Positions 30,147-58,524 of a DNA stretch of 64,000 bases are shown piece after piece. Numbering within the stretch: position 1 is the stretch's first letter; the number at the start of each line of letters is the position of its first letter. The stretch is from Lytechinus pictus (lineage: Eukaryota). The position numbers and the translations under genes are program-made. Location of the stretch: NCBI RefSeq assembly GCF_037042905.1, contig NC_087255.1, positions 23,250,001-23,314,000 on the forward strand. Direction: 5' to 3'. Below the pieces are notes generated by a model. It was not told the origin of the DNA and ran no database searches. It saw nothing but the letters and a program-made list of their open reading frames with translations.

Positions 30147-30578
30147 GTTGTAAGCTACGGAGTCTGACTACCCTACTTTATTTTCACAAATCTTACTACA
30201 ATATTTGTGACGCCCCCTCGTAAAAATTAAAATGATACGACGAAGTCAAATATAGTGACTTTTAGTCAAATTTGACACCTTGTTTAAAGCTACTATTGAA
30301 GCCTTCAAGGCCGGAGTTGGTTAAAAGTCACGATGTCATGAAATAAAGACTTATTGTCTGTTAAAAAAAGGAAAGAAACAATAAGGTTTGTCATTGTTGG
30401 CGATGTGTTGTTAAAAGCTATCGATATCGAAAACAAATGTCCAAAAATGCATCGCACCCCCTCATCTCCCTCTTCTTCTGTATCTTATATTCTTCCTTTA
30501 TTATTGTCTGTCAAAAATTAAAGAAAAAACTATGTTAACTTTGTCATTTTTTGTTTGCGATGTCTTGTTAAAAGCTAT
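30147..30578 (+). promoter_or_regulatory. Cluster of GTTAAAAGCTA-type motifs upstream of LC8 paralog 1
   Basis: Exact copies at 30410, 30567; variants at 30147, 30282, 30320. Function is inferred. Confidence 0.5.
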
Positions 30579-30619
30579 CGATATCGAAAAAAATAAAGAA
30601 TTAACAATTTAAAAAAAAC

Positions 30620-30820
30620 GGGGGCGTCGTGGTCTTGTGGTTATGACTCGCATCTTTCAATCTGAGGGTCGTGCGTCCGATTCCCAGTCTTAGCGGATTT
30701 TCCTTCAGCAAGAAATTAACGTAGAATAGGTTTAGCAGGGGCAATATCATAAATATAGGAGCGCCTTGAACACCTAACAAGGTGGATACGTGCGCTAAAT
30801 CCTATTTTTATTTATTATTT
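30620..30820 (+). mobile_element. tRNA-derived SINE
   Basis: A-box-like gtggtcttgtgg, degenerate B-box gtccgattccc, 3' gagcgccttgaa...gcgct with (tat)n tail. Confidence 0.7.
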
Positions 30821-31544
30821 CTTCTGCCTTTCCTCTTCTTTCTAAATTTTCCTTTTTCCCTCCCCTTTTCACTAGACCTACTTAAAATCATAGGGGGCGC
30901 GGTCGCCAGCTGTTGCCCCTCGCAGCGCTGCTCCTGTATGCGTAAGGAAGAATGGATCCTCTGTAAATCTGCAACATTTTTTGTCTTCTAAATTGATACG
31001 ATTTCACCACAATCCTGTTTTTTTAATCACCGATGAAGTAACAGCAAAGTCAAAACTACATAGTGGCGGATTCATACAGGGGGTGGGGCTTTAACAAAAA
31101 AAAGTAGGAGAAAGGAAGGGTAGTCACTACTCACGGGAATAATGTTCCAGTGCTTTCTTTGTTGCTTTTTTTACAAGAAATCACCCCCTCCAAACAAATC
31201 AAAATTAAATTTGGGAAGTTGCATGGGTCCCCATTCCATCTCCCCCCTTCTGAGATTTGCGCCTGATTCTACATGTGACATCGGCATTGCAAGACGTAAA
31301 ATTTGAATGACATTTATTTATTTGTCTTCTTTAGTTGTTACAGTCCAAATCTTCTTCTTCATTGTTCCTTTTATTTGACGTCTTGCTATATCGTCCCTTT
31401 TTTCGATTCCTCCACTTATGTGCTTGTTTTCATTTCTTTCTTTTTAACTGCATGCGTGTGGGTGTGTGAACGAGACTTCTGTGCCGTAGGCCTATAATAG
31501 TAGATGTATCGAATCATTTCTTTGCATTCTCCATCCTTGTCTAG

Positions 31545-31621
31545 AGCAGCATCAGATGCCAGTGCAGTGAATCTCTCAAGAAGGTCTCTTGCTTCAATCT
31601 TTCACAACTATTTCCACTATC
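31545..31621 (+). other. Predicted 5'-UTR exon of LC8 paralog 1 (contains 4-codon uORF MPVQ*)
   Basis: Pyrimidine tract + gtctag acceptor, ATC|GTAAGT donor; same layout in paralogs 2, 4, 5. Confidence 0.65.
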
Positions 31622-31980
31622 GTAAGTTATACCCTTATCTCTATAGACCAAGTATATAATGGAAGTTATTTTTCGAAAATATCGAAATCTATGTCCGTTA
31701 TTTTGTGCTCTGTTTACTTTTTTGGGAGGGGGTGCTTCTTTTTACAAATTCATCGTTTCTTTTCATCTTTTTCGTTTAATTTCAAATCCAAACGGAAAGT
31801 AAATTCTTTCCTTTTATATTGGGCTGATGTTTTTAGTAAACATGAGCTTAGATTTCATCCAGAGAACATAAAAAATGTAGTGAGATATGGATAAAATCTT
31901 AAAATTTGTATCTATAAAAGCTTTCTTAATAAATGATTAAAAAAGGTTTCAGTCCTATCGCATTTTCTTTCACGTTCTAG

Positions 31981-32289
31981 ATGGATCGTCGAGGTGGCGG
32001 CGGATCTCGGTCTGCAGGCAACAAGAATGACGAACTCATCGTTAAGAGTGCAGACATGTCAGACGAAGACCAGGATCTTGCCTGTGATATCGCTAAGGAC
32101 GCCATGGGGAAGTTCAACGTCGAGAAGGACATTGCCGCCCATATCAAGAAAGAGTTCGATAAAACCCACGAACCGACTTGGCACTGCATCGTCGGGCGCA
32201 ACTTCGGCAGCTACGTCACGCACGAAACAAAGAGTTTCATTTATTTTTACATCGGTCAGAAAGCATTCCTTCTCTTCAAGTCGGGATAG
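31981..32289 (+). CDS. DYNLL: Dynein light chain LC8-type, paralog 1 (102 aa)
   Basis: ADM...[13 protein letters not shown]...[19 protein letters not shown]...LLFKSG; splice acceptor ttctag directly before the ATG. Confidence 0.96.
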
Positions 32290-32959
32290 AAGTTTAAAAG
32301 ACAAATTCTGATAGTTTCTTTAGATTAGATCAGAATTCAACATTCACAGCGAAATTTGTTCCCAAAGTCGTTATCACCGAGCGGGAGTTCGCGTCGTCGT
32401 CAGATAAGAATAGATGATGATTAAAATTTATCAACTCAATTCTTGCATGAATATATTTTATTTAGGAATAACATTAAGTGATATCTTTTCGAAAAAAAAT
32501 CTGTGAAATTATCTTCGGATAATAACTATTTCATTTTTAAGCAACACCTATCTCCCATGTATGTCATGTGTATGTACATGTATATATTTCATCTGACATA
32601 GCATAGGATGTAAATTACTCATTCTAAAATTGAGAAATATATCTCGTGGTGCTACTATATACTGTAGTTTCAAACATATTCCAGCTATATAGGATGAAGA
32701 AGTGTTATGAAGACTGACCTCGGTAAAGCTATAAATCAATTTTGGGCCATTGTTGCGTGTCACATATGCTCTAGATAATTTACTTTTGACATCAAAATAA
32801 TGATTGCCGTGATAATATTGTTGCCTGTATAGAAAATGGTTTTAAAGGTGACAATGAGCAGATAATGATTTAATGATTTGCAAAGTTGAAAATTCACCGT
32901 TGTCTAAATGATGAAAGTATTAATCTTTCTTCTGCTTATTTTGGTAACATTGTCGAGGT

Positions 32960-33341
32960 GGGTTTGATAGTTACTATTTAATAGTTTGATCGATTATTGA
33001 TTATTTTATTGACTAATTGAGTACATGGTTGCTCAATGGAATGATTGTTTGATGATGAGGATAAATTCTAGACCCAAGATGTTGATCACAAAAACACATA
33101 GGCATGTATTCCAGACCTTATTTTGGTACAATATGATTGATTGATTGATTTGATAAATAAATTGATTGCTCTGTCAACTGATTAATTCCTTAATGCTTAT
33201 TAATCTATCCTACGCTTCGTTGGTTTGTCAGTATGTGATTGATTGAAGAAAAATCGAAATATTAATTTTATTTTTATTGGTTGGTTGATTGATTGATTGA
33301 TTGGTTGACAGGTTGATTGATCGATTGGTTGACTGACTGAC

Positions 33342-33377
<36 letters not shown>

Positions 33378-34800
33378 CGTTGATCGGTTGATTTAATGAT
33401 TGATTGATTGATTGATTACACTCTAAAAAGGTTTACCCAATATTGGGTAAATGGGAACCTGCATGTTGGTTGGGTAAAAAGATACCCAATATTTAGTAAA
33501 GTTTACGCAATGTTGCGTTGAAAGAGCCCAATATGGGGTAAAAAACAGCAAACATGCAAGTTTCCTTTTTACCCAATATTGGGTAAAATTTTACTGTGTT
33601 TTTAGAGTGTAGGTGATTGATTGATTGGTTGATTGATTGATTGGATTGTTAGGTGATTTGGTGATTAGTTTCTTTTTTGGTTGATCAATAGGCTAGGTGT
33701 TTTGTTAGAAGAATGGATCGTTTATTAATTTTTGTTGGTCGAATAAACAATCTTCCGACCATCCAACTACTCAACTAGATGGGATTGTTTGTTAGAGTGA
33801 TGTTTGGTTGGTTGATTTATTAGTTAAAATAAATAAATTGATTAATGTAGACATGACGAGATATATCTCGAGATATATTTCTCATCACGTCTACGAAATT
33901 TATTAGTTAGAAGAATGGATGGTTAGTTATATGTTTTATCGAGTTGTAGGTTAGTTTAATGGTTGGTTGAGTGGATGGGTGGTTAAAGTTGTTTGATTGG
34001 TTTGACGGTTGGGCGATTGGTTAATTAGATGATTAGGTGATTGATTGGTTGGTTAGTTAGGTGGTTGTCTCATTGGTTGGTTGGTCGGATAGATTGTTGG
34101 TTGGTTGCTTAGTTATTTTGTCAGATGGTTAGTTATTGGTTCGTCGGTTGATTGATAGGTTATTGGATGGTTGGTTGATAGTTTGGATTGTTGGTTGATT
34201 GATTTGGCAGTAAGATGATTGGTTAGTCAGATGGTTAGTTTATTGGTTGGTTTGTTAGAGGGATGCTTGGTTGATTAGTTAGTTAGGTTATTGATTGATT
34301 GTGATGTGGTTTCTTAGATGATTGGTTAATCAGTTGGTTATTTGGATGGTTAGTTGGTTAGTTAGATGTTTGGTTGGTTGATTAGTTGGTCAGTATTATG
34401 GTTGGTAGATATGTTGGTTACCTTGATAATTAGTTGGTTAGTTAGATGCTTGGTTGGTTGATTGGTTGGTCAGTATTATGGTTGGTTGTTTGGTGAATGG
34501 TTATTTGGATTGCTAGTTGGTTTTTTTTAGTTAGAGGCTTGGTTGGTTGAATGGGTTGTCAGTTTTATGGTTGGTTAATTGTTTGGTTGGTTATTTGGAT
34601 GGTTAGTTAGATGCTTGCTTTGTTGTTTGGTTGGTTACTTGAGTGATTGGCTGGTACTGTCGAGTGCTTTGCTGATTAGTTGGTTAAATATTTAGATTGG
34701 TTGGTTGGTAAGTTAGATGGTTGGTAATTCATATGACTGGGTGAGTGATTGGTTAAAATGGCTGGTTGGTTTGATGACTGATTGACTAGTTGGTTTAATA
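32960..34800 (+). repeat. Degenerate (TTGA/TTGG)n microsatellite tract
   Basis: Directly visible. Confidence 0.95.
33419..33609. mobile_element. TA-flanked MITE (CACTCTAAAAA TIR, Tc1/mariner-like)
   Basis: ta|cactctaaaaa ... tttttagagtg|ta. Confidence 0.8.
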
Positions 34801-34826
34801 ATTGCATACTTGAAATAAATATTTAA

Positions 34827-36502: not shown

Positions 36503-36538
<36 letters not shown>

Positions 36539-39490: not shown

Positions 39491-39979
39491 TTAATCAAGT
39501 AAATTAGTCATTCCATTCAGTTCTATGCATTTAATTCGCAATTAGGACAAATATGATTGGTATTTAGGTATGATTACATATGCATAGGGACTTGATCATA
39601 AAATGAATATACAGAGTTGAAATAGAGAAAGCAATACGAAACAACGAACAACACTGGTTTTCATTTTCCTGTCGATTGATAGATATTCATGCGTAAAATA
39701 TGCTGGAAATATCATGCTGATATATTATCTCTCAATCGTCATGAAAATTTGAATACAATGACCCTAGATCCCCTACCCTCCCCCTCCCCCTATTTTTCAA
39801 TTTCTAATGTTGTATGTGTGTGCTACTCCTGGGCCCCTTCTTACAAAGAGTTGCGATTGATCCCATTTCCCTGATCGATCCAATCAACATCAACTAAATG
39901 GATATCTATGGAAATTTGCACATCGGGACCCGGGCCACCATAAATAAATTCCGTTATGATGACAAACGTAGAGAGGCAC

Positions 39980-40313
39980 TAGAAATATCTTTCTCACGAT
40001 ACAACCGTTTTGGGAAATGCCTCACACCTAGCACACAACAATGGTTAAAAGCTACTGAGTCAACTAAATAAAAAGGGAATCGTCAAAGGAAAAAATGCAG
40101 TGTAAAGAAACCAAATATGGCGTTAGAATAAACAGCCCCTTGAACGTTATTGCATTGACAAGACGCCAAGGTAGTATATTCATAACATCACGTTACAAGA
40201 TTGGGTAAAGAGTACATGCTTTAAACAATATATTGCTGGCTTGTTACAACCTCCATGTATGCCGGGGTGGGGTGTAAATGCAATAAGATTTACATTGTTT
40301 TGTTAAAAGCTAC
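39980..40313 (+). promoter_or_regulatory. Conserved non-coding block with two GTTAAAAGCTAC motifs upstream of paralog 2
   Basis: Motifs at 40044 and 40302; patchy homology to 44910-45240. Confidence 0.5.
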
Positions 40314-40581
40314 GAGAGAAATGGCCTCCGTTCATTTTTGTGTCTTATTTTTTTTTGGTGAGAACGTTCAAATAAAGCACACTATATATCCACAAGACGT
40401 AGTGCTGACAGTTTTTGATGACCTGTCATTCTTACGAAGATATTGAAGAACATGAAAATGATAAAGATTATTGGTTGATGGTATAGATGGTGCTGCTACA
40501 AATGATAATGAAGGGGTGAGGGGTGAGGGGAGAAGGAGAATAAGGATGATAGGGGAGGGAGATGATTAATACTAAAATGTG

Positions 40582-40736
40582 NNNNNNNNNNNNNNNNNNN
40601 NNNNNNNNNNNNNNNNNNNNNNNNNNNNNNNNNNNNNNNNNNNNNNNNNNNNNNNNNNNNNNNNNNNNNNNNNNNNNNNNNNNNNNNNNNNNNNNNNNNN
40701 NNNNNNNNNNNNNNNNNNNNNNNNNNNNNNNNNNNN
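40582..40736. other. Assembly gap (others at 43187-43364, 53378-53630, 58685-58860)
   Basis: Runs of N. Confidence 1.
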
Positions 40737-41167
40737 AGGCCTAATGGTAATGGAGATACGAAAGTGATGGTGTGCTGGTGGTGACGATTATCATAATTCA
40801 ATATGATTATGTTGATGACCACAGTGACAATTATGATGAAAATGGTGATGAAATTCGGTGCAAATTTGAGATAGGGGTACATACTACCCCCATCGTTTTA
40901 GAAGGATAAGGGGGTGGTTGCAAAATAAAAAATGAAAATTGAAATATATCTATTCTTCATAAAAAAGTGCTCGGATGATTGACTATTATAATTCTCATGT
41001 TTTCATTTCTCAGCCTCCTATTGTGTTTGAGGTTGGATGCGTGTGTTTTTTTCGAGCGGGGAGTACGAGTACAAGTTCAAAGAACAAAAGTTGTTCCGAC
41101 GAAGATATATAACATAAATATTTGGTACAAATTAGGCTTATTCGTCATCACCCTATACCCTCACTAG

Positions 41168-41243
41168 GATATCATCTGATTTGAGTCTTCAGCAACTGTA
41201 ACTAGATTCGATCACCCCGTGGTTCACGGCATCTACATCAATC
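41168..41243 (+). other. Predicted 5'-UTR exon of LC8 paralog 2
   Basis: cactag acceptor, ATC|GTAAGT donor; in-frame stop, so non-coding. Confidence 0.65.
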
Positions 41244-41771
41244 GTAAGTGACTGAGATTTCAATGTTTTATAGTAGTCAGTTAAATCTCTCAATCGTATT
41301 TTCTATGCCAAAAAGAAGCAATTGTATCTTTATCAATCGCAAATGACATTTTAATGTTTTATATAGTAGTCAGATGAATCTCCCAATCGGACATTTCTAG
41401 ACATAAATGAATAATTTCGATTACAATAAGATTGCTAATAAAATTTTATAATAATAATTCAAACTGACAATAGTAATTTAAAATTAACAATTATATTTTT
41501 GCAGTACTAATCTCAATTAGAAATGATAATTACAATTCACAATGATAATTCTAATTACAGTATCAATTTGATCATTTTTAAAAGAAGCATATCGATAATG
41601 TCTTGATTCGAATTTTTCCTGAGAACCGTTGATCTAAAACTTACAATGAATTATATATGCACATACACTGCTTAGACTTCATTATTCCTTTTTTGGGTGG
41701 AAATTTAGTAGATCTTGAATCTTTTGTACAATGGCATCTTTATTATTGTAATATATTTTTTTAATTTCTAG

Positions 41772-42086
41772 ATGAGTCGCAGTGGTCGTAGTACCTTCAT
41801 GTCCGATGACAAGCGATCAGAAAAAGACAAACTTGTCGTTAAGAATGCTGACATGTCTGACGAAGACCAAGAGGATGCCATATCAGTTGCGCAGGAAGCG
41901 TTCGAGAAGTTTACCGTCGAGAAGGACATCGCCGCCCACATCAAGAAAGAGTTCGATAAGACCCACGAACCGACATGGCACTGCATCGTCGGGCGCAACT
42001 ACGGCAGCTACGTCACTCACGAGAAAGGCGGTTTCATCTACTTTTACATCGGTCAGAAAGCGATCCTGCTCTTCAAATCAGGATAG
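41772..42086 (+). CDS. DYNLL: Dynein light chain LC8-type, paralog 2 (104 aa)
   Basis: KNADM...[13 protein letters not shown]...[16 protein letters not shown]...ILLFKSG; acceptor ttctag|ATG. Confidence 0.96.
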
Positions 42087-43369
42087 GGGAAAAAATCAGC
42101 GAAATAGAATCAAGTAGCTGGAATCATTTTAGGTGCATATATGACTTTGGATGAAACTCTAGGTTGACGAAGATATTATAATAGAAAACAGAGGTAGATG
42201 GATGCTTTCTCTTCATGTGTTGCCGATGTAATATCACCGATTTATATTTATTTTAATAAGTTTTCAATTCAGATGATAAAGCATAGTTTATAATAATATA
42301 ATAATGATTTATATGTAACATAATATTTACAATTATCATCTATCATCCATCATCGTTAGGGCCAATATTCAACTCATCTGCGATTCGTGGAATATTTTCC
42401 CTAACTCATGGAATATTTATGGTATTCCATTCTGTGCCATCCAATATAATTTAATTATTGTATCATTTATTGTCTTAATTCAACAATAAGGAAATTAGAA
42501 GTATATTATATCACTTAAATTCTTGATATGAATCGCAGTGCAAAAATCAGATTACCCCTACTGTACAGAACCTAAAGAAAATGATAACAATCTGTGAATG
42601 GAAACAAAAAGAATAAATAAACAAATAAATAAATATATTGATTATGTAGTCTTATATCGATATTATAAGGAATTCGAATTTGAATGAATATTCTCCTGTA
42701 TTCAATTGTATAGTGCACTGCATCGTGCAGTTGAATAGGTTGAAAATTTTGCCCAATTATCTCGATATAGCTTTTAATATTATCTATTCCAATAAAGGAT
42801 ATAAACTGTTATTTTTTTTTTTGGTTGACAATTGGAGATTGGAAAAAAAATCGAAAGTTAATGGATCATCATTTTTTTAAAACATTATTATCATTGCGTT
42901 GCTATTATTGTTATTCTTCTTATAGTTATCATTCTTATTTTTATTACTGGTGTTGTTATTATTATTAATCAACTATTGTTACTCATTATATATTATCTAT
43001 TAACAGTCACTGTAATGTAACGAAATACAAAGAATTCGAGATCAAGCCCGAATGAAAAGAGAAACAGTTTGTTAATTTGATATGTTCAGTAAGGTATACT
43101 TTGGATATTTCATATGTTTTTTGTGTATCTTTGTATTGATATAATTAAGAGAAATCGCCCGAAAGGGTTTAATCAAGACAGATCTGNNNNNNNNNNNNNN
43201 NNNNNNNNNNNNNNNNNNNNNNNNNNNNNNNNNNNNNNNNNNNNNNNNNNNNNNNNNNNNNNNNNNNNNNNNNNNNNNNNNNNNNNNNNNNNNNNNNNNN
43301 NNNNNNNNNNNNNNNNNNNNNNNNNNNNNNNNNNNNNNNNNNNNNNNNNNNNNNNNNNNNNNNNAGTAG

Positions 43370-43600
43370 ATTCGTTAGATTTGCTTTATGATTTTTTCTT
43401 AGGTTTGATGCGCTGATTAGTCAGTTTTTAGACGATTGACTGACAAATTGATTGAGTGTTTGATTGATTAATTGATTGATTGATTGATTGACTGACTGAT
43501 TGATTGATTGATTGATATAGATTGAGTGAGTGATTGATTGATTAATTGGTTGGTTGATTGATTGAGTGAGTGAGTGAGTGAGAGAGAAAGAGAGAGAGAG
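43370..43600 (+). repeat. (TTGA)n/(GAGT)n microsatellite next to gap 43187-43364
   Basis: Directly visible. Confidence 0.9.
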
Positions 43601-44909
43601 TGTGTGTTTTTGTTATTGTTATTTGTTATTGGTTTTTGTTATTGGTATTATGGGTTATGATAATATTTGTTCGAAAAATTTATATCAAGATGTATATTAT
43701 TTCATTTGTTATATTGATGTATAAGTGTACTTCACTTTAATTTGCATACATGTATTTGATTTATTACCCTTGTACATGAAAAATGTAATAGTATCTGAAT
43801 AAAGGCTAAAAAAAGCAAGAAAAAAAAAATCGCGACCCGTTTGAGATAAGAATTTAAAAAAAAAAAAGTGTGTGTGTGTGTGAGTGAGGGAGAGCCAATA
43901 TAGAGAGGGGTGGGGTAAACGCCCATGTGATCTTCCAAGTACTGAACAAAGGAACAAAAATATATTACCAATAGGGGAAAAGAAGGATAAAAGAAGAAAA
44001 GGAATAAGAGGATATTAAAAAAGATATTCGAGTCGTGTAATTGTACAATATGGTTTGTCTCATTCCACCGGGCGTTTGCGTCGGGTAGGTTTGTCGCGTA
44101 ACCACACCTTTTTAGAAAAAGTCCCTCATAATTCCATATTGATTAAAGTATTTTGCTCAGTTGCTTCTATCGTTCGCATCTTTTTAGAAATTTTGTCTCA
44201 TATGCCATGTCTGCCCCCCCCCCCCCCCCCCTCCCCTCAGTTATTATTACGCCACTGGGCGTCCGTTATAGATTGTAAATCTGTATTCAATCCATGACAA
44301 TTTACGAAACAAACTGCAAGGATTAAGAAATTATGTAGATATTTTGAATGCGACAAGTCACAATACTCAGCTACAAAATACATTATCAAGAAGAGACACG
44401 ATGATTAACAGGCAAGCAAAATCACATTACTGCATGAATTGCATTATTTTCTCTTTTTAGAATTTTAAGAACTTCAAGTGAAATTTAATTGCTTGGATGG
44501 AGTGAAAGATTGATAATTCTATTCTGATAATTTCAATTCTATCTGATCACGGTTAAACAGGCTTAGGGTAAATTACCATGGCCGTACGCAAATTTTATTT
44601 TCCGGGGGGGGGGGGGGCAGGACGCATAAACATTTTTGAAGAAACTCAAAAGCGAGGGACTGAGCTTGTCATTGGGGGCAATTTTGCATTTTGTAAAGTG
44701 AATTCGAAGGATTTCATGCACACTTTTAATTTTTTTTTAATGTTCAGTAAAAAAATGTTAGTTTTCAAAATTTCTAGGGGCTAACTGCCCCCTGCCCCCC
44801 CCCCTCCGCTTAAGGCAATGGAAATTACCTTTTTTTCCTTTATAAACTCTTGTCATTTTCAAGTTTGCATTTCATCTCTTTCATAAGTATATCATAGTTA
44901 TTTTGAAGG

Positions 44910-45240
44910 AGAAATATCTTTCTCGCGGTATAATTATTTTATTCAATGTACATGGCGAACGTTACAGCCTCCAGTGCCAATTCAAAGAAAAGAATAGACT
45001 TTATACTAAAATTTTATAGATGACAATAATAAAAAATGGTGTTATAGAATAAAGCAACTCTTCACCTCAACCTTGTCAAGACGTCAAGGTTTTCCATTCA
45101 AAACACTTCTCCAAACAATCTGAAAAGGGTTCCCAAGACAGAATGTCCATACAGTGTTGTTTGTTAAAAGCTACGGCTAATATGAAGGATAATTTTTTTT
45201 TATAATATAGGTGATTATTGTTTTGTTAGAAGCTACGAAA
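44910..45240 (+). promoter_or_regulatory. Conserved non-coding block with GTTAAAAGCTAC / GTTAGAAGCTAC upstream of paralog 3
   Basis: Motifs at 45163 and 45225; homology to 39980-40313. Confidence 0.5.
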
Positions 45241-45603
45241 AAAAGTGACACCTTTTCATTTTTTATTTTCTCCTTTACTACGTGCAGATGATCAAACATT
45301 GGATAATGTTGTTGTTGCTGCTGTTTTTTCCAATAACTTTTTCAATTTTCCAAAGTACATCTTGCCTTTAAAATTGAATACGAGCTTCTCCCCCAATCTG
45401 CATTCCATCAAATTAAATGGGACTCTAAAGGTTTTTATGAGTATATTTTTTTTAAGAGAAGATGATAATTGAAAGTATTATCAAAATCGGACAAAGGATG
45501 AGAAATTCAAAACTTTGTTAAGTTGCAGGAAGTTGTACTTACAATACCCAAATGGGGATTTCAAATAAGCCACATGGTCCCTAGTAGCATATTATGGATA
45601 GTG

Positions 45604-45760
45604 TGGTCATGTGGTCTAGTGGTTAGAGCGTTGGACTCCTATAATCGTAAGGTTGAAAGTTCGAATCCCCGCTCTGTCATTGTCTCTACTTTGATTTAAA
45701 ATAAGACCCAAGAGCAATTTATGTCGTCTATAAGGTCAGCCGCTATATGCATGATGAACT
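45604..45760 (+). mobile_element. tRNA-derived SINE fragment
   Basis: gtggtctagtggttagagcg A box and gttcgaatccc B box without a closed cloverleaf. Confidence 0.7.
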
Positions 45761-47069
45761 ACGTAAAATGTTTCCTGACTACTCTTCTATTTTTGATACT
45801 CAAAATGGCCAAAGCATCCCCCCTTTTCCCCTCAAACACTTTTTACTCAGATTTTATTTCTTTTACGAGGACAGATTCGATTATGCAAGTTATGCGCAAA
45901 TTGATCTCTGAAACTATTACTCATGATCATGACAAAATCAGATTTTATAAGAAATTGTACTCATTGGTGATTTAACAAATCCGAGCTTTGAAGGGCAGGC
46001 CTACGTAACAACACTTAACTACACAAACCCAACGGTACCAAAGTTATTAAAAATATTATATTCAAGTTAGAAACAAAAGTAAAAAATAACAATTCAACGC
46101 CTTATCTCAGCACATTATATGAATTTTTCTTTTAAGTTATTAGCCTTTGTCAACAACAACAAGAAATCAATAAAAGTATAGATGATGTTAAGTCGAAAAA
46201 TCAATGTATTTCTTTAAAATTACAATATTCATTGTCTCAAGTAAAGTGGGGGCGTGCGAAATTATTTTCGGTCCTTTCTTTCATTTTTTTTTCCTGACAA
46301 TAATACGAATACTTTCTCAGTGAGTGAATATGGGGGCGTTGTCAGTCAACTTTCAAAGCCAAACCATGTTGTTGTGGGTTATCGAGCTGGGTGTAAAGTT
46401 GACCTTGAAATAAGAAAAGGTTTCATATCCGAACGCCGTGGGAACACTTCGAAAGGGTATTTGTCAATTCTTTTGTTTCCACCAATTGTTGCGTGAAAAT
46501 TCAAAAACGTTTGATATGGTTCAAGAAGGGCGTGTAAAAGGGCGAAAGATGAAATGAAATAGGTCCTATTGACCGTAGAGACTGACTTTCTTTTTATCTT
46601 TCATTTCAGTTAGAAAGTTTACCCCGATCCAGCGTAGTTTGATTTTCCCTAGCAAAGCCCTGTCATATCACTTCAGGTAAGAAACTAACTATTAGTATAG
46701 CGTTTTTACCACTTTTAAAGCTCATTTTACTTCATAATGTATATGATATTTACACAATGCTTAGTTTATCATCTATGAACCAAAGAAAGCAGAAGAAAAA
46801 CAAAAACATATTGCCTCTATATAAAAAAAATCAATCTTATGTTTCTGCTGACGTCGCATCAATCACAGCGATACAATGACCGACATTATGCTTTACACTG
46901 GGGAGCTGATAAGTTGGAGAGAATTTCCTAGAATTCTTTTTCATTGTGCTATACCCAAACTGATGTAATTCCGTTGACAATCTTGTGATTGGTTAAATGT
47001 TAGCTTTTATGAATAAACAAAAAATAGGATTTTGACATGATTTAGGCAATATCGTTTCTCTTTAACAGG

Positions 47070-50000
47070 ATGTCGAAAACCAGTCATTCTACATATAGCT
47101 TCAGTACCAGTGCAAAGACTAGTGGTGGTTTCACAAGCAACTCACCGGTAAGTAGGCCTACTCTGTTATTTTTTTTTTTTTTCAAATATATACATTTTTT
47201 GGAGGGGTATATGAAGTTCTTCGTGCAGTCTTTTGTGTTGTATTGTCTTGTCTTGGGTTAAGTTTAATTCATTCTAGTATTTAGTGGTTCGAGGGAAGAA
47301 GCTGTATTTATGAGTATCCCTTGACGTCGAAATTTGATAAGTATTTTCTCTAGTCTGCCGGCTAGTTCTGTGGATGAAGTTTTTGGGGTTGATGGCAACA
47401 AGACGTTTTATTATTTGAAAGATTAGGCTAAGTCTACAGACTTTCCTTTCTCAAGAGTGTTTGTTATATCATGGACAGTAAGTATATAGAACGTATAGAA
47501 CGTTTTGCACTAAAACCATGTTGGTTGTCAACCGAGATTTCATGCATTTCCAAAATGTACAATGTTTTCGAGTATCTTATAAGCAATACCAGTTAATGAT
47601 ATTCCTCTGTAGTTAGAGGGATCAGACGTGTCCCCCTTTTAAAGATAGGACAAACATTAGCCCTTTTCAACTGTAAAGTGACATAACCCTCATTTATTGA
47701 GGACTGATAGATATTACTGGGGTTATTTCATTTGCTTCCATTTGAGCTATGGAGGAAGGTCATCTGGTCTAGATATCTTGTTACGATTAATGCTGTGGAG
47801 TTGTTTCAATATTCCAGGGGCCCGTTTCATAAAGAGTTACAACTGATCAGAATCAACTTTCCCAAATAAATGCAAATGCTGACTTGTATAAATGATTCCG
47901 TGTATTGATTTAAATTGGAACTCTCTAAGTCGGCTACTTAATGTGCATCACGTTGGTCTTTTAAAATATTTTCGATGTCTTTATCTGAAAAACGATATAT
48001 TGCATTTTAGTCTTGTGAATATTCCAGGTGTTATTTCTTTCTGGTAAAAAAATGTTGTATAAAGTGTTTTTTATGCATTTTCATTGATTAATACAATATT
48101 TTTACCTGGCTAATAAAAAAAGCAATGTCAGGTTGAATTGTGTCTCTATCTTTTCTCATATAACTGTGTCTCTATCTTTTCTCGATATCAGGCATAATCG
48201 ATTAACAATATTTACATCAACAAACCATAATACAACAAATTTTTTAGCGCCCCCCAAAAAAAATAAACAATAAATAAATGAAATCAGATAAATCAATTAA
48301 AAATAAATTAGTAAATGAATAAAATGAAATAAAAATAATAAATAATTATGAAAAAATACATCATGACTCCGCCCCTGTCTGTGATGATAAGATAATGGCA
48401 ACAGAATGGTTATCAATTGTAGAAAATCGGGGTTTGTGTGCATATACCTGATACAGATATAAACAATTTGATTTCTCCAATAAAAGGCTTTTCATCAAGT
48501 AGATGCTTTAGTACTTGTTTTACACATAATCAGGCAAGGTACCTTATGACCCGATGGGAGAATGACAGCAAGTTATATATAATTCCAGCTTAAAATGGGT
48601 TAACAGATACATAGCCGTAACTTATTTTTTTCACATAAAAATCCTCTTCACCTTGCTAATATAATCAACTCTGAACTAGAAAATGTTACCGAATGGATAA
48701 GAGCAAATAAATTGTCACTAAATCTTCAAAAAACAAAATACATGTTGTTTAGCAACTCCATAAATACACTTCCTGTTGATATTATTTTGGATGGAACTCC
48801 CTTGGAAAATGTATCCCATATTAAGTTTCTTGGAATAACAGTCGATAATAAGCTCTCATGGAAATTTCACATAGATAACATATGTAAAACTATTTCACGC
48901 AACATTGGTATAATTAACAAGCTTAAATTTTGTTTACCATTATCGTCCCTGCTTACATTATATTCATCCCTTATATTGCCTTATTTAAATTATGGAATTT
49001 TAGCGTGGGGTAACACACAACAAACACTCTTAGACAAATTACTCCTATTACAAAAGAAGTCTCTACGTATTATATGTCACACGGCATATTTGTCTCATAC
49101 TGACCCATTATTTTTTTAACATAGAATATTGAAAATTAAGGACTTATATTTGTTTAATCTCGGTCAGTTTATGTATAACTATAACAACAACAACCTCCCA
49201 AATGTATTCAATTCAATGTTTCCAAAAAATCAATCCATTCACAACTATCCAACAAGGCGATTGGGTGAATTTCATTTACCACTTTTAAGAACTTTGCGGG
49301 CTCAGCACACATTTATATACGATGGACCGAAGTTATGGAACTCACTTCATAATGATATAACAAATGCAAAATCTTTGAACTCTTTTAAGACTAAATTCAA
49401 ATTATCTCTATTAAAACCTTATAATATACTCCCAAATTAATTTTAATTCATCATTTCTGTCAAGTCATCATCATTATTATGTCAAGTCATCATCATTATT
49501 ACTTTAAACTAAAATTAAAACATAAAATTATTATCCTTTTTTTATTAAAAAAATCTGACACAAGTCCTTCTCAGATGTGCTCATTATTGTGTCTATCCTC
49601 TCCTCTATTTTCTCCTCTCCAGTCCGCTTATCCGCCTTCCTACCGGTTATTTGTTTAACGGCATCAATCACATTTTTCGTGCATTATATTCTTTCCAGGT
49701 TATTTTATATATTTTTTCTCCTCTTATACACATCATTGAATCCAGTTTGCTTGAGTCCACGACGGCATTTGTTCTATCTACGTACAGCAGCACCCATCCA
49801 TCTTCTCAGGGCATTCTCCCCCTTTTTCCCTTTTTTTTTCTTCTCAAGTTTTTCTGGGGGGGGTGGGAAGGGTAAATATTTTTAGGACGGGTTGTTTTGT
49901 CCTTCACCAAACTGTATATTTTTTATTACTTTGTATTTATTTTGTGAGTATTTCCCTCTCATTTATTCACTCTTTTCTCATTTGATTATCTGTATTTATA

Positions 50001-50945
50001 CTTTGTTATTTTGTTATTTGTTGTGTTATCTATTTCTTGAGGGGCCCACATTGTACAAGCATTGCTTTTTAGTGGGTCCCTCCATTTCCATCTTAATTTA
50101 ATTTCTATTGAAAAATAGTATATATATTTAAAACCTACAATGTGTTGCCCAAATCGTCTAAGTGTTTTTTTTTTTCACTACATATGTATAATTAATTTTG
50201 TTTGCAACGGATACAAATATTTATGTTTTATATATGGTATACAATTTGTTTTTGTTTGATGGAAGTGAAATAAATGAATTTGAATTTGAATTGAATTTGA
50301 ACTTTCCTTTGTATTCATTTTAATTACAACATGTAATTTTGTATGAATTTATCTTCTTGAAATAAAAAAAACCAAAACAATGACTTCCGATGAATTTATC
50401 ACTTTCCGTTCTTAAGTTACAATTAATTGGTCGTCTCGAAGCTCCTTTTTATTCAATTTTTGTTTTTAAAAAATGTGCTATATTCATATTTATCTTTTAT
50501 CAGTTTAAAAAAATGACAAATTTATGATTGATATTCCCAAACTAGTTAGAAGCATATGCTAATGTGTAGATCTAGATGGCAACCTAATTAAGCGTCTATT
50601 CAAAATTCTCCCTCTTTCATCTAGTTCATTAGTTCACCGTCACCATCATCGTCGTCATCGCTGTCATCGTCAAAGAAAAAAGATCAAAAGCCAGTCATCA
50701 AGAGTGTAGATATGACAGAGGACATGCAAGATCGAGCCCTCGACCTCGGCGTGGATGCCATGGAAAGATTCCAAACCGAGAAAGATCGCGCCGCCCACAT
50801 CAAAAAGACCTTCGACCTCGAGTTCGACACCACATGGCACGTCATCGTTGGCAAGCATTTCGCAAGTTTCGTCACGCACGAAGCAAAGTGTTTCATCTAT
50901 TTCTACATCGGTCCAATGGCTTTTTTGCTTTGGAAGTCGGGCTAA
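47070..50945 (+). CDS. DYNLL: Dynein light chain LC8-type, paralog 3, two coding exons join(47070-47147,50625-50945), 132 aa with Ser/Thr-rich N-terminal extension
   Basis: LC8 core in ORF 50712-50945 stays open upstream to acceptor catctag at 50624 (FISSPSPSSSSSLSSKKKDQKPVIKSVDM). Upstream exon MSKTSH...NSP ends G|gtaagt in matching phase 0. The core is certain; the join is inferred. Confidence 0.85.
48619..50301 (+). mobile_element. 5'-truncated CR1/L2-group LINE (RT C-terminus, 3' UTR, (TTTGAA)n tail) in the intron of LC8 paralog 3
   Basis: W..ANKLSLN..KT, KFLG...D.KLSW..HI, LY.SLI.PYL.YG...WG, GPKLWNSL; one in-frame stop at 49117; aaataaa + gaattt repeats at about 50270-50300. Confidence 0.9.
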
Positions 50946-54517: not shown

Positions 54518-54948
54518 GTCAGAACTTGAGCGTGCAGTGAATGATTATGACGATAACGACCACGGCCAACATTCATTTATTTATTTCTACCGTTCTAGGT
54601 TTGATCTGGGAGTTTTCGATTTTACGACGCTCGACGGATTCGGGAACATAGATAATGTATTGTCAAGTACCTCTCATGACAAAGCAGTCTTTGTCGAGGT
54701 TGGTGAATCGGAGCAGCAGCTTCGTCCTAGGCTCTAGTATCTGGAAAAAAGGACATGCCATTTTTCGTCAGCTCCGAAACTTGGGACAAAAGTGGTGTCC
54801 CGGGTCACCAATTTTCGACAAAGACCTCCCAGCTGTTTTGTGTCATTTGACGGGTTTTTCAATGCATTTTCTGCGCTCTTGAATCCATCCCGTTGCAGTT
54901 GCGAAAGCATTCTAGTGTCTAAGGATCTAAATCTTTTATGTCAAACAT

Positions 54949-55254
54949 CTAGCCAGATTTGAAGAGAAGAATCGCCGTCTGTCCGATGTAGAAGTAGGTG
55001 AAATTATCTTTCTCGTGAGTCACAAAGCTGCCGAAGTTTCGCCCGACGACGCAATGCCATGTTGAGTCGTACTTGTTGTCGAACTCCTTCTTGATGTAAG
55101 CAGCGACGTCCTTCTCGACGGGTTTGTTCTGTTTGTCACCGAGCTTATCCATGGCTAACTTGATGGCTTCTTCCTGCATTTCCTCGCCCATGTCAGCGTT
55201 TTTGACAACGGCTTTGTCCTTCTCATTCGACATTCCCGAGTAACCGCGATTCAT
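54949..55254 (-). CDS. DYNLL: Dynein light chain LC8-type, paralog 4 (101 aa)
   Basis: KAVVKNADM...[13 protein letters not shown]...[16 protein letters not shown]...ILLFKSG; acceptor gctag|ATG on minus strand. Confidence 0.96.
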
Positions 55255-55698
55255 CTAGCGTTGAAATGATAATTAGAAAGACAGATTTCTAAATGATATC
55301 GTTAACAGCACACTTGTTTTGATAAGTACTAGAAGGGGGTTAGCAAGGCTGAAATTGATATTACGTTTATGACAATTTCCTCCAAATTTGACGAAAAATG
55401 ACAGAGATAAGACAATTCAAAGTTGTGTTGCTAATCATGGGTGTAACCTAAATTCATTACCAGAATTTACCAAAGAATATCACTTCAAAAAACAAAATGC
55501 AAAGACGTCGCATCAAAGATAAAAACTTGACGATTAAAGTTTGCGGAGTTCTACTGGGAATCGTGTATTTTACGGGAATGTTGAATTGGTCGCAATATCA
55601 AACTTTAGAACAAGATTCACGTTATAGTAACCGAAAAGGGTGTTTTTAAATACTTGAATATTTTGAAATCGGGATTAGATATTAGCAATCGTTATCTA

Positions 55699-55891
55699 CA
55701 CTCTAAAAACAAATCAGTCAAAAATGACTTCTTTGATAGGGTCAGCTGGGTGCAACTGTTATTCTAGTCATATTTGACTATTTTCTAGTTGTATTTTACT
55801 TATAGAACAGAGTTATTTCTGACTAGAATATATGTCAGAAATGTGACTAGACAATTAGTTGTACCAGTTTGACTGATTTGTTTTAAGAGTG
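55699..55891. mobile_element. TA-flanked MITE (CACTCT TIR)
   Basis: ta|cactctaaaaacaaatcagtcaaa ... tttgactgatttgttttaagagtg|ta. Confidence 0.8.
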
Positions 55892-55993
55892 TACTGATGG
55901 ATAACTATGCATTTGGAGCTAATAACACTGAAAAGATACTGTCAAATTTATATCATTAATGTATTATAAATTTACGAAATAAGTTTGACTTAC

Positions 55994-56054
55994 GATTGAA
56001 TTTGTAGGAATTTGTTGACGAGTCCAAAAATGAAGACAATAAAATCGAAATATT
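55994..56054 (-). other. Predicted upstream exon of LC8 paralog 4
   Basis: Minus strand: gtctcttcag acceptor, ATC|GTAAGT donor; a further CAG|GTATGT donor at 56201. Confidence 0.65.
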
Positions 56055-56488
56055 CTGAAGAGACGTTTCTTTGACGAGATTGAAATGCAGAATAAGCTTT
56101 TGATACACATACGTCTCTTGCAGTTTATACGTGAAGCTCGTTATTATCACACGAGCCGCACGCCCTCCCCCCCCCCCCTCGAGAGACGAATACCGACATA
56201 CCTGACAGTGTAGTTGAGAAATGAAAACAATTAGTGCAAAAGAGTACAAAAGAGAATACCAACAAACCCAATTCAGCCATTAAAGTCAAAACACACAAGA
56301 AAACTGTCTGACTTTAATGAATGGGATAGATAAAGGAAGCTGTCTCGAATTGGTACGCACTAAGAAATAGGGGTTCAAATTTGAACCATATGAGTTGATA
56401 TAATAGCAGCACCAAAAAGGATGCTAATTGATGCAATTTTGCTCATTTGTGCATTTTTAAGGGTGCAATTAGCTATAAGCACACTGTA

Positions 56489-57330
56489 CAGGCGCGTATC
56501 CAGAATTTTGCACTCCGGTGGCCCCATAGGCGGCGGAAGCGGGGGGGGGGGGGGGGGGCGGGGGGACAGGTCCCCTTAAATTTGAGGTGGGGACGGTCCC
56601 CCCTAAAATTTATGCGAGCGCATAAAACTGGACATTCTTAGCACATTTTGTAGCCATGAAAAGGATGGGAATCCATCTTGTGCGAGCGCGAAGCGCAAGC
56701 TGAAAAGAAAATGATATTCTGACCTAAACTTTTGACATTCTAAGCACTTTTGGTAATCATGAACAGGATGGTCATCTAACTAAGCAATTGATGCGAGCGC
56801 GAAGGCCAAGCTGAAAGATTTTTTATATGCTGCCTTAATATATTGACATCCTAAGCACTTTCTGTAATCATGAACAGGATGGAATCTAATCAATTGATGC
56901 GAGCGCGAAGCGCGGACTGAAAATTTCTGATATTCCAACCCAAAGTTGAAAATTCTAAGCACTTTTTATGACCATGAACAGGATGAGTATCTATCTAAAC
57001 TGATATTCTGACCTAAAATTTGCACTTGCTAAGCACTTTTGGTAATCATGAACAGGATGGGCTTCTCAACTAGCATGAATTTGGTGCCCCGTCAAACATC
57101 AAATTGGCGCCCCAAAGGTTGAATATGAATTTAGCGCCCCCCCCCCCCAGGTTGAACATGAATTTGGCGCCCCAGGACAAACATCAAATTGCGAATATGA
57201 ATTTCCCCCTCTTCCTAGGTTGAACATGAATTTGGCGCCCCATAACAAACATCAAATTGGCGCCCCTGTGTCGAACATCAATTCGGCACCCCTAGGTAAA
57301 ACATCGATTCGGCTCCTCTATGTCGAACAA
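56489..57330. repeat. Composite repeat: about 120-bp tandem units (gcgagcgcgaagc...ctaagcactttt...atgaacaggatg) followed by short aaattggcgccc units
   Basis: About 4 long units at 56630-57060; repeated catgaatttggcgccc at 57070-57300; probably transposon-derived. Confidence 0.75.
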
Positions 57331-57471
57331 AGTTAACTCTTGTACACCTTCACGGATGCAACAAGAATTATCCCGGATTGTCAATCCGGGGTCATCGATA
57401 TCCGTGTTGTCAGGGGGTACAGCGTTCTTACCGACCACTCACCCGGCGCCTTCCTTAATGTACCGGCATGT

Positions 57472-57660
57472 CAGGGGGCGTTTCATAAAGCTGTTCGTAA
57501 GTTAAGAGTGACTTTAAGAACGACTGCATGGTATAACTTTTTTATGCGCTATAATCACCAATGAACATTTAATGTGAATATCATTAACTACAAGAAAGGA
57601 TCACCAGTCGTTCTTAAAGTCACTCCTAACTTACGAACAGCTTTATGAAAACGGCCCCTG
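57472..57660. mobile_element. MITE with about 55-bp TIR
   Basis: cagggggcgtttcataaagctgttcgtaagtt / aacttacgaacagctttatgaaaacggcccctg. Confidence 0.85.
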
Positions 57661-57977
57661 GGTTGAGTACAACAAAATGTGGATCAATTTTTTGCTGAAG
57701 GAAATTACGCCATGGCTGGGATAATAATTAAGTTTACCCTAAATGCCTCTTAGTTTTGTAAATTCATTTCGTCTAGGAATATTTCTAAAGCAAGGAAATT
57801 GGGTTTTGCTTTGTTTAAATTCACAGTCATAACGGGTCAAGTCACACGAAAGTATTTTACAGTATTTGTAAAGGTCGTACAATCAGTTGGTTTGGAGTCG
57901 GCCTTGATGGTGTGGCTGTAGTATAAGTTGTGTTTTTTTTTACATCGTTCTCATTATTTGAATCGTTTCTTTGCTAA

Positions 57978-58040
57978 GGTGCCGTGGCCGAGTGGTCCAC
58001 ACTATGAAAGTCCGGGGTTCGATCCCGGCACGGCCCTTGA
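57978..58040 (+). mobile_element. Truncated tRNA-derived SINE head
   Basis: gtggccgagtgg A box, ggttcgatcc B box. Confidence 0.6.
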
Positions 58041-58274
58041 CCGAGACATTTGTCTTTGAGCTTGCATCAAATATATGAAAATTCTATATCGATTTTATCT
58101 TGCATCAAATAAATGAAAATGCTATATTTATACCAATGTGTGCACGTGTTGTTTTTACAAGTTCTTTACTTTGATTATCAGTAAGTATTTTTGATAAAGC
58201 TTTTTAAGTATTATAAAGTGTTTCGATTCATTTTTTGTGATGCTTGGATATTGTTCAGGAATTTATCTTTGCCA

Positions 58275-58524
58275 GTGGCTTTTAACAGAATAGGGAACCT
58301 GTAACCATTTTAGGGGTGTTTCTCGTAGCCCCTGTGTTTTTAACCTCTTCTTCGTTTCGGCGTTAAAAGGAATCCGTGGGAATATTTTAGACTCTGTCTG
58401 CTTTCATTCTTTTGTACCTCTAAAGTCTTACATTGTCTTTGGTGAAAAGTAGACCTTGCGCCGTAAAGTGTGGTATCTTATGTAAGTAAATATGAAATTT
58501 ACCACTCACTCAATAGCTTTTAAC
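58275..58524 (-). promoter_or_regulatory. GTTAAAAGCTA / GTTAAAAGCCAC motifs upstream of paralog 4
   Basis: Reverse-complement copies at 58514-58524 and 58275-58286. Confidence 0.45.

Follow-up and report, generated by a model that had tools for sequence, protein, structure and literature searches.

The LC8 array and the word that precedes its genes

The LC8 array of the sea urchin Lytechinus pictus raises a simple question: why does one short word recur upstream of paralogous genes whose surrounding DNA can mostly no longer be aligned? The window, i.e. the whole stretch of 64,000 nucleotides analysed here, holds five LC8 paralogs recognised by PF01221 matches in open reading frames: paralog 1 (coding exon 31981..32289, + strand, 102 aa, N-terminally extended, with a splice acceptor immediately preceding the ATG), paralog 2 (coding exon 41772..42086, + strand, 104 aa, also supported by RNA), paralog 3 (50688..50939, + strand, coordinates of the Pfam match), paralog 4 (coding exon 54949..55254, - strand, 101 aa) and paralog 5 (coding exon 61970..62278, - strand, 102 aa). 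A sixth LC8 coding sequence of the array lies just past the window end.

Transcript evidence for these genes consists of one spliced contig, from run X1, which reaches 8 nt (CATCAATC) beyond the acceptor at 41772. Within the region CATCAATC followed by GT occurs at 41236 only, so that paralog 2 is given a non-coding 5' exon whose 3' end is placed at 41236..41243 (+ strand, CATCAATC then GTAAGT) and an intron at 41244-41771. Paralog 2 is transcribed (X1 depth 170-370, with coverage continuing over the 3' UTR as far as about 43.2-43.9 kb), and three raw RNA runs gave essentially zero reads over the LC8 genes of the window. A putative donor for a non-coding 5' exon of paralog 4 (TTCAATC then GTAAGT, 55992..55999, - strand) is proposed by analogy with paralog 2.

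The word has 12-13 bases (TGTTAnAAGCTAC), its core is the exact 11-mer GTTAAAAGCTA, and the consensus of the unit, 12-13 bp long, is T-GTTA-n-AAGCTA-C-(G/T)-G. The 11-mer occurs six times in the window against an expectation of 0.05-0.14: the lower figure comes from shuffling the window (0 of 100 shuffles get to six) and the upper one, per 64 kb, from 1754 occurrences in the 812 Mb genome (vs 792 for the reversed control), close to the value of about 0.1 that had been guessed beforehand. Paralog 1 is preceded on the + strand by the variants GTTGTAAGCTA (30147..30157, identical in Lytechinus variegatus) and GTTTAAAGCTA (30282..30292, 14/14 positions kept in L. variegatus), by a weak unit with two mismatches (GTTAAAAGTCA, 30320..30330, read directly and under the scan threshold used elsewhere) and by exact units at 30410..30420 (TTGTTAAAAGCTATCGATATCG) and 30567..30577, the latter 1.47 kb before the start of the Pfam match. 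Paralog 2 has a distal exact unit at 40044..40054 (+, TGGTTAAAAGCTACTGAG) and a proximal one at 40302..40312 (+), which sits within the perfect 14-mer TTGTTAAAAGCTAC and is followed about 70 nt downstream by the TATA-like CTATATAT. The distal unit of paralog 3 (45163..45173, +) is exact and again part of a perfect 14-mer; together with the variant GTTAGAAGCTA (45225..45235, +) it stands 5.5 kb upstream of the gene, with retrotransposon-like open reading frames in between. Paralog 4 has, on the - strand, a proximal variant (GTTAAAAGCCA, 58276..58286) and a distal exact unit (TTGTTAAAAGCTAT, 58514..58524), the latter 3.3 kb upstream of the coding sequence.

Each of the six exact copies lies 5' of the LC8 gene closest to it and shares that gene's orientation, and none falls within positions 1-30000. 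The initial annotation, which had listed these copies and their near-variants, had found the vasa half empty of exact ones and had read the word as a mark of LC8 upstream regions, is confirmed in its observations, and its suggestion to look beyond position 64000 proved rewarding: the units of paralog 5 are found there, at window-equivalent 64464 and 64596 (-). Motif counts refer to copies outside assembly gaps and no copy touches a gap; the closest to one are the 40302 copy, which the gap at 40582-40736 follows after 270 bp, and the 58514-58524 copy, about 170 bp from the gap at 58695-58860. Any distance measured across a gap, e.g. between the motif and the first exon of paralog 2, is approximate.

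The unit accompanies the LC8 family and outlasts its surroundings

The association extends to the family as a whole. With at most one mismatch allowed, GTTAnAAGCTA precedes, in the sense orientation, all but one of the 18 LC8 coding sequences, i.e. 17, which are spread over three chromosomes; the distance to the coding sequence is 0.7-5.5 kb. The 102.7 kb upstream of the 18 coding sequences hold 41 sense and 2 antisense units, vs 7 and 8, respectively, for a reversed-control unit. When sense 8-mers are ranked in the same DNA without a preset motif, the strongest enrichment is that of AAGCTACG, found in 11 of 18 genes where 0.67 are expected.

LC8 genes are not independent samples in this respect, because both the orientation and the presence of the unit in all paralogs were partly inherited by duplication. 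The observation that copies always follow the orientation of the gene is correct; as an independent sign of orientation-dependent function it does not stand, since the sense orientation came along with the duplicated promoter. Could the motif then be a neutral remnant of recent tandem duplication, held by no selection at all? The copies at 30410 and 30567 clearly belong to one local duplication of about 157 bp, and a 47-bp block is common to the sites at 40302 and 45225. This block is, however, the one motif-bearing alignment that blastn finds among the upstream regions (the rest are repeats), which bears out the impression that the surrounding DNA is mostly unalignable; the other paralogous upstream regions have drifted beyond alignment and the unit has been kept all the same.

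Comparison between species argues in the same direction. Between L. pictus and L. variegatus, whose flanking DNA differs by about 15-18%, the core positions are identical at 88 of 88, and changes affect 2 of 112 positions in the 14-mers, whereas the flanks have 117 in 640 (Fisher p = 4e-7). The earlier proposal of selective retention is thereby borne out, and the equal conservation of the flanks that had been named as evidence against it is not what we find. Conservation reaches the distant urchin Diadema setosum, where the two LC8 genes sampled are both preceded by sense units with position-weight scores of 19-25 bits, accompanied by CCAAT and TATA. Taken together, these data leave the neutral-duplication reading strongly disfavoured, and we give it hardly any credit. 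Outside the urchins, a starfish promoter has variant units only, and the 20-kb LC8 loci of alligator, planthopper and mussel contain no promoter-side position-weight match, although insect promoters may exceed the 10-kb flank.

Canonical genes have a probable proximal-promoter layout

At canonical LC8 genes two units follow one another head to tail, repeating every 13 bp, and in 8 of these genes a forward CCAAT comes 19-21 nt later (background 7%); a CCAAT at short fixed spacing is seen in 9 of the 12 canonical C2/C6 genes. In Diadema, TATAAAA comes after the CCAAT. Judged from sequence, dimer and CCAAT, joined by TATAAAA in Diadema, form the predicted layout of a proximal promoter. Composite NF-Y promoters may offer a parallel, in that a gene-specific site lies beside a forward CCAAT at fixed spacing. 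The six genes of the window array, which encode N-terminally extended LC8 paralogs, differ from this model: none has a CCAAT within 70 nt of any unit, and NF-Y binding itself is read from sequence only. Instead of dimers, each of these genes has 2-4 single units, 60-260 bp apart, with the donor of the 5' non-coding exon about 0.9-2.5 kb further downstream. The window array has lost the CCAAT partner of the canonical LC8 genes.

Another possibility is that the unit acts in RNA or marks the start of transcription: it would sit inside or bordering a first exon that lacks annotation and serve as an initiator-like or 5' UTR element, not as a classical site for an upstream factor. Its strictly kept orientation relative to the gene would fit, as would the donor GTGAGT 4-14 nt after the unit in paralogs 4 and 6 and the GTGAG at +47 in paralog 2. 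But in Diadema and in the canonical genes the unit is upstream of CCAAT and TATA, hence before the start site; 2-4 units spread over 60-800 bp, the situation of most LC8 genes, suit a single start site poorly; and the one spliced contig links exon 2 of paralog 2 to the donor at 41243, not to a motif-adjacent donor. We consider an RNA or start-site role improbable.

We rather propose that the unit is a cis-regulatory element of essentially every DYNLL-type LC8 gene, held in place by purifying selection, a reading that the sequence comparisons make likely. Since the word keeps its sequence and the DNA near it does not, the most probable role is that of a binding site for a factor switching the whole LC8 family on together. 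A single sequence-specific DNA-binding protein would dock at the unit and, at the canonical genes, would work beside the CCAAT-binding factor NF-Y; since each paralog carries the site, the family would be driven as a single regulatory unit. In the window array, the unit may be an upstream activating element, or may act at a more distal start site.

A MITE family shares the word

How specific is the word to LC8 genes? The 19-mer GTTAWAAGCTACTGAAATC occurs 1609 times genome-wide vs 0 for its control and belongs to a MITE family of at least 1,600 copies, about 140 bp long, with terminal inverted repeats GGGGAGCATTTCATGAAAC and a central loop that contains the exact 14-mer together with an inverted CCAAT. 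Fifteen to seventeen of 20 sampled 14-mer sites sit in this element, i.e. about 80% of the other genomic copies, and outside the repeat family 14-mers occur genome-wide at about the control rate (3-5 of the 20 sampled sites are non-repeat; control 17 vs 112). An older repeat carries the same dimer as the LC8 promoters, with an inverted CCAAT at similar spacing. The word, being also the core of a MITE, is therefore not unique to LC8 genes.

These repeats raise the prospect that the LC8 copies are what remains of decayed elements, either the MITE or the older dimer repeat, present by history and devoid of regulatory role. The 40044 copy might even be taken as a case in point, being flanked, like the older repeat, by CAATGG to the left and CTGA to the right. 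A MITE profile run with nhmmer over 234 kb of LC8 loci nevertheless recovers one true copy only, downstream of a C6 gene, and the profile of the older repeat, at the LC8-upstream sites of the same 234 kb, finds a similarity confined to the dimer itself, so that at no LC8-upstream site does either repeat extend past the unit or dimer. The repeats have a density of about 1 per 500 kb, vs 41 sense units in 103 kb of LC8 upstream DNA, and the CCAAT of the repeat has another orientation than that of the LC8 promoters. Decayed repeats would also hardly be better conserved than their flanks across species, nor keep the same promoter position in Diadema. That repeat debris explains the LC8 copies thus appears quite improbable, and by all indications from sequence the LC8-upstream copies are not MITE copies.

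The spread of the MITE explains the genome-wide excess of the word and leaves the LC8 copies unexplained. The initial annotation had regarded membership of a dispersed repeat as grounds for giving up its proposal; the word does form the core of such a repeat, and the LC8 copies do not belong to it. Its idea of a shared cis-regulatory word stands for the LC8 genes themselves (17 of 18, with drifting flanks and counterparts in Diadema), although the word is not exclusive to them. On this sequence evidence the core cis-regulatory proposal holds, and proves stronger than first put. The MITE resembles known transposon-borne transcription factor sites in that the element carries word and CCAAT to many loci, and differs from them in that the sites of the host genes, here LC8, are not element copies. 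As for the direction of transfer, the element may have captured the LC8 promoter module, or the two may have converged, and some LC8 units may derive from ancient insertions.

The unit does not fit the RFX X-box pattern

Since LC8 is a dynein subunit of the axoneme and of intraflagellar transport, one could picture the motif as a degenerate RFX X-box serving ciliary co-expression; read on the reverse strand (GTAGCTTTTAAC), it opens with GTAGC and closes with AAC. The loose resemblance to an RFX box noted earlier dissolves on closer comparison: the reverse strand GTAGCT/TTTAAC misses the X-box at 3 of 12 defined positions and forms no palindrome. An X-box, scanned as the regular expression GTNRCC-N(0-3)-RGYAAC, is an imperfect palindrome, whereas the units are direct repeats, for which reason we hold the resemblance to be spurious. 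The scan matched at C2:16634575 only, and at none of the motif units. Canonical X-boxes of this genome look quite different, and the one LC8 gene without the motif has five of them, of the GTTGCCATGGTAAC type, in its upstream DNA; one canonical promoter and Diadema also have an X-box-like GGTTGCYARG, separate from the unit and downstream of the CCAAT. Unit and X-box are alike as shared upstream words of ciliary or dynein genes, but they differ in pattern and in dyad symmetry, and the true X-boxes of the LC8 family lie elsewhere. An RFX identity is extremely improbable.

A candidate factor and its possible reach

Which factor could recognise the unit? In flies and mammals LC8 has a dedicated zinc-finger factor, ASCIZ/ATMIN, which its own product inhibits, through the autoregulatory circuits ASCIZ/ATMIN-DYNLL1 in mammals and dASCIZ-Ctp in Drosophila. 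ASCIZ has been described as a dedicated LC8 transcription factor (PMC5963919, PMC3428950, PMC8608018), and LC8-mediated dimerisation has been suggested to aid its binding to the promoter (PMC5963919). The urchin element has traits that such a circuit would call for: an LC8-dedicated promoter element is what an LC8-dedicated factor needs, a footprint of about 12 bp would suit four C2H2 fingers, and head-to-tail dimer sites would suit a factor whose two chains are held by LC8. An ASCIZ site is expected upstream of LC8/DYNLL genes and largely restricted to them, as is seen at 17 of the 18 genes, and also to be conserved in other phyla under ASCIZ control, unlike the urchin motif, which the LC8 loci sampled from alligator, planthopper and mussel do not contain. 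The text of the accessible literature gives no sequence for the ASCIZ DNA motif and merely mentions a HOCOMOCO entry. By analogy, an ASCIZ/ATMIN orthologue is the leading candidate for the factor at the unit, and we put it forward tentatively.

It is tempting to go one step further, in what we regard as a rather unlikely speculation: the unit may be the element to which the feedback factor of LC8, whether ASCIZ or a functional analogue, responds in echinoderms. Through one head-to-tail dimer site, kept in sea urchins that are only distantly related, free LC8 would tune all 18 genes, and the MITE would have copied the module of unit and CCAAT to more than 1,600 loci. If so, the MITE copies would have brought unrelated genes under the control of the LC8 homeostat, or would have formed a genome-wide sink that buffers the factor.

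LC8 genes and the word upstream of them

The whole Lytechinus pictus genome carries an expanded LC8/DYNLL family of 18 full-length genes whose coding sequences lack introns. LC8 genes are placed as six on contig 11, of which the window covers positions 23,250,001-23,314,000, eight, three and one on contig 2, and one on contig 6; contig 10 carries in addition an LC8-like gene that contains an intron. Intron-free coding sequences with Pfam Dynein_light matches define paralogs 1 (32038-32283), 2 (41832-42080) and 3 (50688-50939) on the forward strand of the window and paralogs 4 (54955-55215) and 5 (61976-62230) on the reverse strand, and a sixth, also with a Dynein_light match, lies beyond the window on the reverse strand (window-equivalent 68251-68496). 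The ORFs of the window array encode LC8 proteins of 101-104 amino acids with a short N-terminal extension, and their nearest named relatives are sea-urchin LC8s.

The 11-mer GTTAAAAGCTA is present in six exact copies in the window, at 30410, 30567, 40044, 40302 and 45163 on the forward strand and at 58514-58524 on the reverse strand, versus 0.05 expected, and none of 100 dinucleotide-preserving shuffles reached this number; the copies at 30410 and 30567 stem from a single local duplication and were counted once. With at most one mismatch, ten window sites were found against 1.7 expected. As the initial annotation had described from the sequence alone, all copies share the orientation of the nearest LC8 gene and lie on its 5' side. 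They are 1.5-5.5 kb away from its coding sequence; distances that span the unfilled gaps at 40582-40736 and 58695-58860 are estimates only. Both gaps are close by and no motif copy touches an assembly gap; the one at 58695-58860, a fourth gap of the window, lies on the upstream side of the copy at 58514-58524, about 170 bp from it. The annotation had also seen no exact copy in the vasa half, and the first 30 kb of the window indeed hold zero copies of GTTAAAAGCTA; the copy that it predicted upstream of paralog 5 was found at window-equivalent 64596, together with another at 64464. Genome-wide (812 Mb) the 11-mer occurs 1754 times versus 792 for its reversed control, or 0.14 per 64 kb.

The comparison was extended to all other LC8 loci, namely the eight-gene and three-gene arrays of contig 2 and the single genes of contigs 2 and 6. 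The unit GTTAnAAGCTA (at most one mismatch) stands in sense orientation upstream of 17 of the 18 full-length LC8 genes, two units preceding paralog 6, and the 102.7 kb of LC8 upstream DNA hold 41 units in sense and 2 in antisense, compared with 7 and 8 for the reversed control. No unit was found at the intron-containing LC8-like gene of contig 10. An unbiased count over the 18 upstream regions returned AAGCTACG as the top sense 8-mer (11 genes versus 0.67 expected), and the position-weight consensus reads T-GTTA-n-AAGCTA-C-(G/T)-G. All paralogs inherited the sense orientation along with the duplicated promoter, and it alone does not prove an orientation-dependent function.

The only paralog devoid of the motif, the LC8 gene at contig 2:16634575, bears on the loose resemblance to an RFX box that had been proposed for the reverse strand of the word. 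At 4.4-5.1 kb 5' of this gene (contig 2:16629507-16630129) stand five canonical RFX X-boxes (GTTGCCATGGTAAC, GTTGCCATGGCAAC and similar) with a spacing of about 155 bp, and they illustrate the form that an RFX site takes in this genome. The unit fails both the X-box pattern and its symmetry; the resemblance was thus not borne out, and we find it scarcely conceivable that the unit is an RFX box. The gene itself may be ciliary and under RFX control; alternatively, the X-boxes may belong to a tandem repeat that carries them by chance.

Gene structure and promoter anatomy

A splice acceptor directly precedes the ATG in all LC8 genes, and each therefore has at least one 5' non-coding exon. For paralog 2, assembled contigs from RNA run X1 contain exon 2, the 3' UTR and one splice junction; the covering contig runs from 41772 onward at a depth of 170-370 and carries eight unmatched letters, CATCAATC, ahead of the acceptor. 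Since the sole nearby site at which these letters are followed by GT is 41236-41243 (CATCAATC|GTAAGT), the 5' exon of paralog 2 ends at 41243; similar donors are present for paralogs 4 and 5. The X1 contigs also differ from the assembly in the 3' UTR of paralog 2 (A>C at 42371 and deletions of 4 and 12 nt at 42465 and 42713), differences that are probably allelic.

The units lie about 0.9-2.5 kb upstream of the donor at 41243, and a TATA-like CTATATAT is found 70 nt past the unit at 40302. We regard it as unlikely that the unit is itself a transcribed or start-site element. In the raw rRNA-depleted RNA runs X6-X8, depth over window positions 39900-45899 is near zero and no start site is readable; these samples thus express paralogs 2 and 3 very weakly or not at all.

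The 5.5 kb motif distance of paralog 3 is unusually long, likely because two adjoining ORFs (48712-49440) that resemble the C-terminal part of a non-LTR retrotransposon reverse transcriptase sit between its motifs and its coding sequence. Other repeats were seen along the array. tRNA-like, SINE-type segments (e.g. GTGGTCTAGTGGTTAGAGC...GTTCGAATCC) occur in three LC8 upstream regions (30620-30700, 45590-45680 and 58000-58065); ARAGORN calls a tRNA in none of them, and they are probably common repeats. ARAGORN does call a tRNA-Met (CAT) on the forward strand at 59954-60029, between paralogs 4 and 5, adjoining a long (CAAT/CAATCAAT)n microsatellite at 59.9-60.6 kb.

The arrangement of the units differs between the two sets of LC8 genes. 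Canonical genes, those of contigs 2 and 6, usually carry a head-to-tail dimer with a 13-bp period (e.g. GTTATAAGCTACGGTTACAAGCTA), and in eight of them a forward CCAAT starts 19-21 nt past the proximal unit, against a 7% background probability of having a CCAAT within 70 nt. The six genes of the window array have 2-4 single units each, 60-260 bp apart, and a CCAAT was found near a unit in none of the six. At the single canonical gene at contig 2:31505557, several CRE-like TGACGTCA boxes flank the units in place of CCAAT (contig 2:31500880-31501080).

A dispersed repeat carries the same word

The perfect 14-mer form of the unit, TTGTTAAAAGCTAC, occurs 112 times genome-wide versus 17 for its control, and 15-17 of 20 sampled sites fall within one element of about 140 bp, a MITE with terminal inverted repeats GGGGAGCATTTCATGAAAC, inner inverted arms CAGTGATTTTCACTGAC and a central loop TTGTTAAAAGCTACTGAAATCCTTGCATCTGATTGGCTGAGAGC that carries TTGTTAAAAGCTAC plus an inverted CCAAT (GATTGGCT). 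The family has at least 1,600 copies genome-wide (e.g. contig 6:22076795-22076925), and the 19-mer GTTAWAAGCTACTGAAATC is found 1609 times with zero in the control. Tandem dimers number 29 genome-wide (control 0), seven to nine of them at LC8 genes; most of the others belong to an older repeat, a relative of the MITE that carries the full tandem dimer (CAATGGCAA, dimer, CTGAAAT, GATTGGCT).

The word thus does belong to a dispersed repeat, an outcome that the annotation had listed as one that would refute its reading, but the LC8-upstream sites show no similarity to the element beyond the unit or dimer. When profiles of the MITE and of the older repeat were run over all 234 kb of LC8 loci, their LC8-upstream matches extended no further than this, and a MITE origin of the LC8 copies was rejected; true element copies were found only elsewhere, such as 3' of the contig 6 gene and past the 3' end of the contig 2 three-gene array. 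That the LC8 copies are inert repeat fragments is accordingly quite improbable. Without the repeat copies, the word is about as frequent in the genome as its control, which makes the LC8 clusters more rather than less unusual. As to how gene and repeat came to share a module, the element may have captured it from an LC8 promoter, or some LC8 units may have begun as ancient insertions.

Retention between paralogs and species

Apart from repeats and coding sequence, blastn among the LC8 upstream regions returned a single 47-bp block (40302/45225). The surrounding DNA is mostly unalignable, as the annotation had stated, and the word therefore persists between paralogs where the DNA otherwise does not align. 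In Lytechinus variegatus the orthologous array aligns at about 85% in non-coding DNA, and all eight alignable units are identical (88 of 88 core positions). Flanks are not equally conserved: within 40 nt, 117 of 640 positions are changed versus 2 of 112 in the 14-mers (Fisher p = 4e-7), and a neutral leftover of duplication is a most improbable account of the word.

In the distant urchin Diadema setosum, sense units (19-25 bits) stand upstream of both LC8 genes in the fetched locus; at the first, a dimer, a single unit, CCAAT, an X-box-like GGTTGCCAAGG and TATAAAA follow one another just before the annotated gene start. The LC8 promoter of the starfish Asterias rubens contains variant units only: a ACAAGTTAC palindrome and CCTAAAAGCCA, 26 nt apart, with two CCAAT boxes and the donor of a 5' exon directly 3' of them. 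The palindrome, perfect over AACAAGTTACCGTAACTTGTT, and CCTAAAAGCCA may be a variant of the urchin units, and are suggestive of an echinoderm-wide conservation. No match to the unit was found in the LC8 loci of mussel, planthopper and alligator.

A predicted regulatory site of the LC8 family

LC8 serves a great number of partner proteins as a dimerisation hub, and a dedicated feedback transcription factor is believed to keep LC8 dosage constant. The association of the unit with LC8 genes, its retention, the dimer geometry and the fixed CCAAT spacing are direct observations. The unit is probably the site of a sequence-specific factor serving the whole LC8 family; such a factor would bind the unit, may cooperate with NF-Y and would co-regulate the family. 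The shared cis-regulatory code proposed initially is partly supported: it is strengthened for LC8 by the 17 of 18 genes and by retention, and corrected as to uniqueness and RFX.

ASCIZ/ATMIN is the known dedicated LC8 transcription factor of flies and mammals; it is inhibited by LC8, and its promoter binding is thought to be better when it is LC8-dimerised (PMC5963919, PMC3428950). A four-finger, LC8-dimerised protein would suit the 12-13 bp urchin unit in head-to-tail pairs; however, the loci checked in a vertebrate, an insect and a mollusc do not contain the urchin word. ASCIZ/ATMIN is thus a tentative candidate. The accessible literature text yielded no sequence for its DNA motif, a search with the motif string returned unrelated primer sequences only, and no sea-urchin LC8 cis-regulatory element or paper on this motif was found. 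A loose resemblance may exist between the proximal sequence element of snRNA promoters and both the TTAAAAG core and part of the dimer junction, but the transcripts of LC8 genes are ordinary spliced mRNAs, and we therefore give it little weight.

A family-specific conserved promoter word is a known kind of thing; what is unusual here is that it covers an 18-gene family and that a mobile-element family carries the same module, the spread of which is a natural experiment in regulatory rewiring. If the word were an ordinary lineage-specific promoter motif, it would still enlarge the known set of sea-urchin regulatory elements in a clean and testable way. It bears on whether the ASCIZ-LC8 loop is ancestral to deuterostomes and on what the factor recognises, and one conserved word at 17 of 18 LC8 genes offers a concrete, mutable handle on the dose control of a multigene family.
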